DNA from: Basidiobolus meristosporus CBS 931.73
Lineage: Eukaryota; Fungi; Basidiobolomycota
Direction of reading: 5' to 3'
Length of the DNA stretch: 64,000 nt
Assembly: GCA_002104905.1 (NCBI GenBank)
Contig: MCFE01000033.1
Span: 1 to 64,000, forward strand
In this document: positions 980-64,000 of the stretch, in pieces
Layout: the number at the start of each line of letters is the position of its first letter
Position numbering within the stretch: position 1 is the stretch's first letter
Made by a program: the position numbers and the translations under genes
Notes under the pieces: generated by a model
Databases searched by the model: none
What the model saw: the letters and a program-made list of their open reading frames with translations, nothing else
Told to the model about the DNA's origin: nothing

Positions 980-1061
980 GGCAAGATGGCCAAGTGGTCC
1001 AAGGTGCTGTGTTTAGGCCGCAGTCTCTCCAGAGGCATGGGTTTGAACCCCACTCTTGTCA
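980..1061 (+). tRNA. tRNA-Leu(UAG), 82 nt, probably a pseudogene (CpG-decayed)
   Basis: Acceptor stem GGCAAGA/TCTTGTC plus discriminator A; D-arm TGGCCAAGTGGTCCAAGG; anticodon arm CTGTG-TTTAGGC-CGCAG (anticodon TAG); long variable arm; T-arm ATGGG-TTTGAAC-CCCAC. The main deviations from the tRNA-Leu consensus are CpG>TpG/CpA changes, including TTCGAA>TTTGAA in the B box. Confidence 0.85.
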
Positions 1062-60134: not shown

Positions 60135-61163
60135 ATGGCAAGTTTTCAATTAGCAAGAGGGATTCTCTTCACCTTGTCGATCTCGTGGTTTGCATGGGGT
60201 AGTCCGTTCTACAACATCGATCCTGCTATTTCACTCAAGGCCAAGCCTGTCATTAATTTCAGTCCAGATATCAGTCCGGAATTCAAAGGACTCTGTGTTC
60301 TTGCTTTTGAGTGCGAGCGAATCCACCGTCCAGTGACAAATCCGTGGATCCCTGGGTATTCTAGCCTTGAAAATGCTGTCAATTTCCTCGCTTCACGCTT
60401 AGCGCCCCCATATCGCGGAGCAATCTACCCACCACCACCACCGTATTTTCCCGGCCAAGACCTTCCAGGCTCCAACCCCCAGATACAACCCTATCAACCA
60501 ATATTGGATCAGGGCCCGCCAGCTGGACCCCCAGGCATTTCCCCTGGCATATCCCCTCTATCGTTGGGTGATGTATCAAATCTCCTCCCAGTGATCCAGA
60601 GACTACTAGCACAGAACCCAGGGCTAGCTCGATCACTCCCCTCGATAGCCGGGGGCGAAAGCAATGCCCCTCCATCGTTGGGCGATTTGTCAAATCGCCT
60701 CCCAGAGATGCAGAGACTACTAGCACAGAACCCAGGGCTATTTCGATCATTCCCCCCAACAGCCGGAGGCGAAAGCAATGCCCCTCCATCGTTGGATGAT
60801 TTATCAAATCTCCTCCCAGAGATCCAGAGACTACTAGCACAGAACCCAGGGCTATTTCGATTATTCCCCTCAATAGCCGGAGGAGGTGAAGGCAACGAGA
60901 GTGACCTTTCAAGTTTACTGGACCTCTTGAAACGCCCTCAAAACGGGGAGCCGAAGTTTAGGAATTTGCTAAAGAATCCGGATTCAGGGCTAGGTGCAGG
61001 GCTAGGCAATAGCGACCCGGCAAACTTCTTAGAGGGTCTGGTTGATAATCCAGAGTTCATAGATCTCCTCAAGAATCTAGATAAGGGACCTGACGAGAAA
61101 AAGGCGCCAGTTAGTGCGAAACAGGCTCTCCCCGATAATAAGAATAGCACCAAGTCACGATAA
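60135..61163 (+). CDS. Secreted protein of unknown family with three 38-aa tandem repeats, intronless
   Basis: Signal-peptide-like N-terminus ending AWG-SP, Pro-rich linker, repeats containing LPEIQRLLAQNPGL; 342-aa ORF. Confidence 0.8.
   Translation: MASFQLARGILFTLSISWFAWGSPFYNIDPAISLKAKPVINFSPDISPEFKGLCVLAFECERIHRPVTNPWIPGYSSLENAVNFLASRLAPPYRGAIYPPPPPYFPGQDLPGSNPQIQPYQPILDQGPPAGPPGISPGISPLSLGDVSNLLPVIQRLLAQNPGLARSLPSIAGGESNAPPSLGDLSNRLPEMQRLLAQNPGLFRSFPPTAGGESNAPPSLDDLSNLLPEIQRLLAQNPGLFRLFPSIAGGGEGNESDLSSLLDLLKRPQNGEPKFRNLLKNPDSGLGAGLGNSDPANFLEGLVDNPEFIDLLKNLDKGPDEKKAPVSAKQALPDNKNSTKSR
60561..60890 (+). repeat. 114-bp coding tandem repeat, about 3 copies
   Basis: Units start at 60561, 60675 and 60789 and share CAGAGACTACTAGCACAGAACCCAGGGCTA. 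Confidence 0.95.
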
Positions 61164-62162: not shown

Positions 62163-62486
62163 GTGAAACACCCAATTTCATCTAACAAGATTTTCGAGCC
62201 ATTCGTTCGTCTTTTTGTACGTGAGTGAAGTTTATATGAAAATTGACATTTTGTTAGAATTTTTCTTTTAATTAAACCGACAATTATATCATAAACATTT
62301 TCGCCGATTGTTCCTTTAGTGGAGGACTTGAAAATAATTGAAGAACTGTCGTAGACGAACTTAATCAAATCGACTGACAACTTCCATCAAAATTAACAGT
62401 TGCTTAAAATATTTGAATTTAAGTCTGGATTTTAGATTTTTGTTTGTATTTGAAAATGTGAATGTATATTGGTACATACAATGTGG

Positions 62487-62760
62487 GTATATACACCGCA
62501 TGGTTATTCCCAACCGTCAAGGTGACATAGTCACCTGGTCAAAAGACCTACGGAAAGACATAGAATATACGGTGCTCTCATTCCATCGTCGAACTCCACC
62601 CCAAGGGGCTTCGCTCAAGACAACAGACGAGTTCTCTCAATGATGTGCCGGATAGAATTATACACCACAAGGGCGACGATTCGCGAAGGATTCGTCTGGG
62701 TGCTTCGTAGTACCGATCGAAAGGGCAACTTGCAGAGCAAGCTCCACGATCCACATCAAC
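62487..62760 (-). ncRNA. snR30: snR30/U17-type box H/ACA snoRNA (18S rRNA processing)
   Basis: Minus strand: 5' stem TGATGTG (62758-62752) pairs with CACATCA (62647-62641); H box AGAGAA (62637-62632); internal hairpin; 3' hairpin CACCGT/GCGGTG enclosing m1-like ATATTCTA (62568-62561) and m2-like TAACCAT (62506-62500); ATA box exactly 7 nt after m2, then 3 nt. Confidence 0.8.
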
Positions 62761-62787
62761 TGAGGGTGGAAGTGGATCGCTCCGATG

Positions 62788-62795
62788 TATTTATA
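62788..62795 (-). promoter_or_regulatory. TATA box (TATAAATA) about 28 nt upstream of the predicted snR30 5' end
   Basis: The plus strand reads TATTTATA; spacing fits a Pol II snoRNA promoter. Confidence 0.55.
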
Positions 62796-63011
62796 TTCGC
62801 CCCTCCAATCACCCGGACCACCGTAAAATTTGGGATACAAAAAAAGGAAAAAAAAGAAAATTTTCTACCTTGGCAGCTTTCGTGGGCACCAAACAATCAA
62901 GGAAACCAAGTATATATCAAGACTCACGAGCATATATTTTATTTGAATATTAAAACAAAGTAAATCTTTTATACATAAAATCTATGATGCTTCGAATTTC
63001 CTACTCCTCGG

Positions 63012-64000
63012 TCAAAGATCCAAATCAGAGCCGTCTCCCAGCCCAACCTCTTTTTCGAATTCGGACTGCTTCATCTTGCCCTTCTTCACCTTCTTGGCCA
63101 ATCTTTCTTCGCGTTGCAGACTTTCCCACTCGTCATCATCGTCCTCGTCGTCACTTGCATCGCGCTTCTTGCCTAGCTGTATGGCTGCCTCAATGGCCTT
63201 TTGGTTGAGATATTCTCGTTTTTTATCCTTCTTCAAGCGACGTTCAGCACGGCGGTCCTTGGCTTCTTGCTTGTCCGACCAAGCTTGCTTTTTCTTGGGT
63301 GCCCTGGGCTCACGTTCTGGACTGAAACAGAAGCCGGATTCATTCAATTAATCTGCCAGAACATGAAACGGCTTGACGAAGCTTACCGATTTTCACGCTC
63401 CTTCAATTTCAAAAGTCTCTGTTTCTCCTTGGCTTTGTCAAGATACTTGAGCTCATCAAGCTAAGGTAGCCAGGAAAGCGGGGTTAGATCGCGATGATTA
63501 GAGGGGAAAGCTGACCGGTACGTACATTAACATCGGGTGGAGAAAAGTCTACTTGACGATCTTTGAGCTCGGGCATTTTAGGGAGCTGTAGAATAAACAT
63601 ATGAGTACGCAGTTTGAGACATGCTAAGAACGGCCTCCCGCAACTAACCCTCAGCAAGCCATAGCCTCTAGCAGCCTTTCCAAAGTCGAAATCCTTGACA
63701 CGGAAGATATAAGTGGCCTCGTGTTTGGAGTAGGATCTTGCAAAGGAAACGAACGCTTTCATGCTCTTGAGAATAAAGGTCAATCATGTAATAGCTTCTG
63801 CGTTGAGGAAGTACATATTACTTTGTCATAGATATCCCTATCAGAGGCCACAATCTGCTGAACTTCCTCTAATATCTTGTCGTTTTCGGGATCTTCGAGA
63901 TCTTCGCTTGAGCCTGAAAGGGGGCTCAGATCTGATTGCAGATATGGGTATCTACGAAGGGGGATCTTTCGGATGTGGAGGAAGTCTTATTGGCGGTTAG
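63012..64000 (-). CDS. SPB4: DEAD-box RNA helicase Spb4/DDX55, 3' part (gene continues beyond the window)
   Basis: [16 protein letters not shown]|[28 protein letters not shown]|[14 protein letters not shown], charged tail. Confidence 0.92.

Follow-up and report, generated by a model that had tools for sequence, protein, structure and literature searches.

An unannotated stretch between the ARF1 and SPB4 genes

The DNA analysed was a 64,000-nt stretch of contig MCFE01000033.1 (assembly GCA_002104905.1, Basidiobolus meristosporus), referred to as the window, and its minus strand was read directly. The candidate stretch is not covered by any called gene. Its called neighbours are an Arf GTPase gene (ARF1) upstream and, on the other side, a DEAD-box helicase gene with CTE_SPB4/CTT_SPB4 domains (SPB4), each of which is split into short exons. 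A first-pass annotation had dismissed the open reading frames across the candidate as spurious; they do not exceed 107 aa, five of them were absent from the protein collection (three, with GTG or TTG starts, may have been missed through the start residue alone), and the 58-aa ORF, the one that was searched, had no homologue.

The minus strand of the same stretch is predicted to encode an H/ACA snoRNA of the snR30/U17 type (Table 1). The features that the first-pass annotation had listed for this strand, namely the stems, the H box, the internal hairpin, the m1 and m2 motifs, the ATA box and the sub-hairpins, were all present between 62762 and 62487. In the 3' hairpin, the basal stem opens into an internal loop that starts with AUAUUCUAU, the m1-like motif, and ends with UAACCAU, the m2-like motif, above which an upper stem is formed by UCUU..CCGU and ACGG..GGGA. 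The tip consists of two perfect sub-hairpins, GGUC-UUUU-GACC and GGUGAC-UAU-GUCACC. The m2-like motif is followed by the 7 nt GCGGUGU, the AUA box and a further 3 nt, UAC, that lead to the predicted 3' end at 62487. The folding check that had been proposed for the RNA was carried out against shuffled sequences, and gave z = -4.2 for the 3' hairpin, where none of 200 shuffles was as good, and z = -2.2 for the whole RNA.

The block upstream of the RNA is presumed to be an independent promoter, probably for Pol II. The TATA box, said earlier to lie about 28 nt upstream, was found as TATAAATA at a distance that brackets this value. The flank on the other side of the RNA may serve in 3'-end formation.

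Table 1. Coordinates of the candidate RNA, its parts and the related copies. Positions are those of the window unless marked L001, a piece of the contig that reaches 7 kb past the end of the window.
Feature	Position	Strand	Basis or remark
Predicted snR30/U17-type H/ACA snoRNA, ~276 nt, predicted ends	62487..62762	(-)	Rfam matches and folds
5' hairpin domain, closing stem GAUGUG (62757-62752) / CACAUC (62647-62642)	62638..62761	(-)	MFE and centroid folds
H box AGAGAA (consensus ANANNA), immediately 3' of the 5' hairpin	62632..62637	(-)	Direct reading
Internal hairpin (CUCGUC...GACGA..GAG), from H box to 3' hairpin	62577..62631	(-)	Fold
3' hairpin, basal stem (G)CACCGU/GCGGUG(U), 6 bp	62493..62575	(-)	Fold, SNORA73 alignment
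m1-like motif AUAUUCUAU (canonical AUAUUCCUA)	62560..62568	(-)	Canonical form from PMC7601244 Table 1
m2-like motif UAACCAU (canonical AAACCAU)	62500..62506	(-)	Canonical form from PMC7601244 Table 1
AUA box (ACA-box variant), 7 nt 3' of m2	62490..62492	(-)	Direct reading, Rfam alignment
Upstream block, presumed independent promoter	62769..62843	(-)	Co-duplicated with the RNA; motifs read
TATA box TATAAATA	62795-62788	(-)	26-33 nt 5' of the proposed 5' end
CCAAT-type box ATTGG	62809-62805	(-)	Motif reading
Downstream flank common to copy B, presumed 3'-end formation region	62431..62486	(-)	Inverted repeat reaches 62431
Copy B	L001 15642-16054 (window-equivalent 65776-66188)	(+)	Inverted repeat of window 62431-62843
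Decayed 3'-hairpin relic, 64 nt, 75% identical	L001 16123-16186	(+)	Directly after copy B

Elsewhere in the window, a single-exon gene (60135-61163, plus strand) encodes a 342-aa protein whose N-terminus resembles a signal peptide and in which a repeat of about 43 aa with the motif QRLLAQNPGL occurs three times. This protein had no Pfam match on record and, among 5.8 billion proteins, no homologue but itself, on one contig only. A tRNA gene (980-1061, plus strand) was the sole match in the window at the Rfam gathering level; it spans 82 nt against a model of 71 positions, an excess that probably reflects an intron or an extended variable arm.

Comparison with the snR30/U17 family

Three snoRNAs are essential for ribosome synthesis in yeast, and snR30/U17, which is needed for making 18S rRNA, is one of them. 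The definition followed here was that of Atzorn 2004 and Fayet-Lebaron 2009, as found in PMC2664660 and PMC7601244, in which the family is defined by its H/ACA architecture, the m1 and m2 motifs, the distance between m2 and the ACA box and the pairing with ES6 of 18S rRNA. The distance of 7 nt between m2 and the box is invariant and functionally important (PMC2664660), m1 carries an AUAUUCC that is invariant across 14 species (PMC7601244 Table 1), snR30/U17 is also marked by an internal hairpin that follows the H box and precedes the 3' hairpin (PMC7601244), and AUA is an accepted variant of the ACA box (PMC6984369, PMC7991803).

The order of elements in the candidate is that of snR30/U17: the 5' hairpin comes first, then the H box, the internal hairpin and the 3' hairpin, and a box of the ACA type comes last. 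In both, the basal part of the 3'-hairpin loop carries m1 on one strand and m2 on the other, with m2 7 nt before the box, a spacing that was exactly as the first-pass annotation had put it, and in both the upper stem pairs a pyrimidine-rich strand with a GGGA strand. The m1-like motif occupies the 5' strand of this loop directly after the basal stem and agrees with the canonical motif at eight of nine positions; the base missing from AUAUUCUAU is the second C of m1, one of the positions without variation in the 14 species of PMC7601244. The m2-like motif, which immediately precedes the basal stem on the opposite (3') strand of this loop, agrees at six of seven positions, with U in place of the first A. 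The candidate thus differs from the family in having AUAUUCUAU, UAACCAU and AUA where snR30/U17 has AUAUUCCUA, AAACCAU and ACA, respectively.

The targets of the two motifs in 18S ES6, rm1 (yeast G802-A806, GGAAU(A)) and rm2 (U836-U841, UGGUUU), are conserved from yeast to human (PMC2664660). No rRNA of the host lies in the window or in L001. With these yeast-to-human targets, which stand in for the host's 18S, the m1-like motif could form five Watson-Crick pairs and one G.U pair with rm1, and the m2-like motif 5 bp with rm2. The m1 helix would be extendable to 9 bp, one of them a G.U, if the flanking bases of a yeast-type 18S are assumed, and on the same yeast-type targets and assumed flanks the predicted stability of the variant m1/m2 pairing is about that of the canonical pair.

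The first-pass annotation had looked to an Infernal search with Rfam models for confirmation. No match over the candidate was obtained when the whole window was searched at gathering thresholds, and two matches below threshold ended at the same base. The latter were obtained when the region 62200-63100 (901 bases) was scanned by E-value against all 4227 Rfam families. SNORA73 (RF00045, clan CL00078), which served as the reference for snR30/U17, matched 62487-62656 on the minus strand with 20.4 bits (E=0.01 in the 901-base scan), and Afu_309 matched 62487-62775 on the same strand with 17.2 bits (E=0.026 in the same scan), both below the gathering score. These were the only structured-RNA matches over the candidate, and both stop at 62487, the predicted 3' end of the RNA. 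Against the SNORA73 gathering score, which is a curation cut-off and not a biological defining feature, the candidate fell short with 20.4 of the 74 bits. The 5' two-thirds of the SNORA73 model aligned poorly, while the 3' hairpin was aligned with high posterior probability at model positions 147-219, and the alignment was ungapped from m2 through the final model position, 219 of 219. Outside m1 and m2, likeness to the SNORA73 consensus extends to the upper stem (CUUUCC.G / C.GG..GGGA) and a UGAC motif.

When rescaled to one family and the whole genome, which we take to be about 89 Mb, the SNORA73 E-value becomes about 0.2. The Rfam scores of the candidate alone would not survive a genome-wide search, and the chance of the core signature was for this reason estimated independently. 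The pattern ATATTC / 38-83 nt / AACCAT / 7 nt / AYA was sought in 20 Mb of first-order Markov sequence built on the window, and occurred twice; in neither case did 5 or 6 of the basal-stem positions pair. The corresponding expectation per 178 Mb is about 18 bare matches and, using (6/16)^6 for the stem, about 0.05 matches with all six pairs. As a negative control, about 120 matches to a loose m1/m2/AYA pattern were collected from metagenome contigs; they were AT-rich and due to chance, and none had six of six pairs in the basal stem. The candidate's arrangement of motifs exceeds chance.

Paralogous copies and covariation

A second copy of the candidate (copy B, the candidate itself being copy A) lies inverted beyond SPB4 and outside the window, 97% identical over 413 nt, so that the SPB4 helicase gene is flanked by both arms of the inverted repeat, with 2932 nt between them. 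The duplicated unit extends from about 45 nt 5' of the TATA box to about 56 nt past the predicted 3' end. The joint duplication of presumed promoter, RNA and 3' flank speaks for a stand-alone gene and against an origin as a retro-copy or as a piece of the SPB4 transcript. Copy B gave an equivalent outcome in Rfam (SNORA73, 20.5 bits). The two copies differ at 2 of 276 sites in the RNA, at 62718 and 62609, and at 5 of 122 sites in the shared flanks (Fisher p=0.03); their 3' hairpins are identical, and every box and the promoter block are kept in both.

The relic that follows copy B, 182 nt downstream of the corresponding part of that copy, goes back to an earlier duplication in tandem. Its m2 has become UUACUAU and its AUA box UUA, and it illustrates the decay that occurs without constraint, in which both motifs are destroyed. 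With an inverted twin and a relic, the candidate belongs to a small amplified family in Basidiobolus. The earlier description of the candidate as "the orthologue" can accordingly be kept as regards membership of the snR30/U17 family and has to be given up as regards a sole gene, since it is one copy of several.

Only one public run shared sequence words with the candidate (X1, a small run whose status as RNA is a guess). It yielded one 202-nt contig, 96% identical, that spans window positions 62545-62746 with both ends inside the predicted RNA and has eight differences from the candidate, seven of which were listed. The contig shows that a paralogue or relative is present in the run, not that the candidate copy is transcribed. 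Where the contig covers it, the m1 motif of this variant is identical to that of the candidate, and the variant's H box, AAAGAA, still satisfies ANANNA.

Covariation was examined in a set of paralogues only, comprising the candidate, copy B and the X1 contig. When the differences were mapped on the predicted fold, all five that fall in the internal hairpin kept the pairing: U142-A188 is replaced by A-U, a double compensatory change, two G.U pairs by G-C and, in copy B, one G.U pair by A-U. Conditional on the sites hit, the probability that all pairs remain intact was about 0.02, and the occurrence of two of the seven changes on pairing partners contributes a further factor of about 0.07. The 5' hairpin is the least constrained part of the candidate RNA. 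Two of the paralogue differences break predicted pairs there, which fits the 5' domain of snR30, reported to be dispensable and not conserved (PMC7601244).

It is highly probable that the candidate is a genuine, unannotated copy of a gene of the snR30/U17 family, its m1, m2 and ACA boxes departing slightly from the canonical forms. This reading, which was that of the first-pass annotation, gained support from several observations: 1) the motif signature, 2) the 7-nt spacing, 3) the common end of the Rfam matches, 4) the co-duplication of the promoter and 5) the covariation.

An unlikely alternative, though the strongest of those considered, is that the candidate is a silent or decaying snR30 paralogue and that the functional snR30 is another member of the family or a more canonical gene. 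The inverted twin and the decayed relic next door would suit such a history, as would the m1, m2 and ACA boxes, all slightly off-consensus, and the presence in X1 of the 96% variant and not of the candidate's own words. However, whereas the relic has lost m2 and AUA, copies A and B have retained all boxes and the promoter block and do not differ in the 3' hairpin, and their RNA part has changed less than the flanks that were duplicated with it. Moreover, since the odd motifs are common to copies A and B and the X1 variant has the same m1 where its contig covers it, the off-consensus m1, m2 and AUA look like the normal state of this family.

That the candidate is instead a pseudouridylation-guide or orphan H/ACA snoRNA, with a coincidental likeness to snR30 in two short motifs, is very improbable. 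The overall architecture is indeed common to H/ACA RNAs and the Rfam score is weak, but no other H/ACA family matched copy A or copy B even at E up to 10, the likeness to U17 reaches into the upper stem, m1 and m2 lie in the basal and not in the distal loop with the 7-nt distance that is specific to snR30 (PMC2664660), and the internal hairpin is itself a snR30/U17 trait (PMC7601244). A chance hairpin-rich intergenic repeat without an RNA product, for which the absence of the candidate's own sequence from X1, the sole related public run, could be cited, is scarcely credible against a composite signature expected about 0.05 times per genome, a 3' hairpin with z = -4.2, compensatory changes among the paralogues and a co-conserved upstream block that bears a TATA box.

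Proposed role and relation to known systems

If the candidate acts as do other members of the snR30/U17 family, the RNA would be made from its own transcript, probably a Pol II product, whose 3' end is trimmed back to a point 3 nt past the AUA box. The RNA would be expected to assemble with Cbf5, Nop10, Nhp2 and Gar1, and to have no role as a pseudouridylation guide. The snoRNP would instead pair with ES6 in a non-modifying mode that uses the basal pocket, and this pairing would hold ES6 and the 18S platform apart in an immature fold. Utp23, Krr1 and Kri1 would presumably be recruited until release allows the A0, A1 and A2 processing steps to proceed. The mechanism by which the snR30 snoRNP acts on ES6 was confirmed structurally (PMC12095548).

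A more specific proposal, for which the odds are low, is that the altered m1, m2 and AUA co-evolved with an altered 18S ES6, through compensatory changes in rm1 and rm2 or through the 9-bp m1 helix, and/or that the paralogues are functionally distinct snR30 isoforms, the inverted pair being co-regulated with the ribosome-biogenesis helicase gene SPB4. Most differences among the paralogues fall in the internal hairpin, and the internal-hairpin region of yeast snR30 crosslinks to Utp23. In trypanosomes, H/ACA RNAs have a single hairpin and an AGA box. The snR30 of Trypanosoma brucei provides a natural example of an altered m1 with compensatory changes in rm1 of 18S rRNA (PMC2664660). An altered m1 is common to the T. 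brucei RNA and the candidate, whereas a match with rm1 is established for T. brucei alone; if it were true, co-evolution with ES6 in Basidiobolus would be the second natural case of such covariation, after Trypanosoma.

Apart from its motifs, the candidate can be compared with the known RNAs in size, gene organization and fold. The lengths of S. cerevisiae snR30, S. pombe U17 and human U17 are 606, 325 and 207 nt, respectively, and the candidate, with a predicted length of about 276 nt, falls between the human and S. pombe RNAs. Like yeast snR30, it is presumably an independent gene, but it is multi-copy, whereas the yeast snR30 gene is single-copy. Unlike that of snR30/U17, the distal part of its 3' hairpin forks to give two small hairpins.

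The candidate is very probably an addition to a well-known RNA family, with boxes that are mildly unusual and an unusual copy number. It was missed by homology models, with 20 bits against a cut-off of 74 bits, and it fills an annotation gap in an early-diverging fungus. To our knowledge, snR30/U17 is poorly catalogued outside Dikarya and animals; in a survey of the fungal snoRNAome, snR30 was named solely through a Neurospora match, and the literature search returned no paper linking Basidiobolus with snoRNAs. The specific DNA pattern of the candidate had no match in metagenome, prokaryotic-genome or viral collections, and neither pattern scans nor searches with the ORF and the neighbouring protein found an orthologue from another species. 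The candidate can serve as a seed for finding snR30 in other Zoopagomycota, and it provides an example of natural change in m1, m2 and ACA, which are otherwise invariant. For the genome itself the practical consequence is small: the RNA is a housekeeping one, and its gene is multi-copy.

The second family matched in Rfam, Afu_309 (RF01512) of Aspergillus fumigatus, was described in its source paper only as a conserved non-coding RNA of Aspergillus, 320 nt long, with no known function (PMC2377427). The RNA is intergenic; its Rfam consensus and the candidate can be aligned over their whole length, with little sequence similarity beyond the motifs. In the Afu_309 consensus, m2 is 9 nt from ACA and the basal stem has a 2-nt bulge, whereas the distance in the candidate is 7 nt. 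Since it carries AUAUUCC, AACCAU and a terminal ACA, in this order, Afu_309 looks like the snR30/U17 of Aspergillus; in Rfam it is placed outside the SNORA73 clan.
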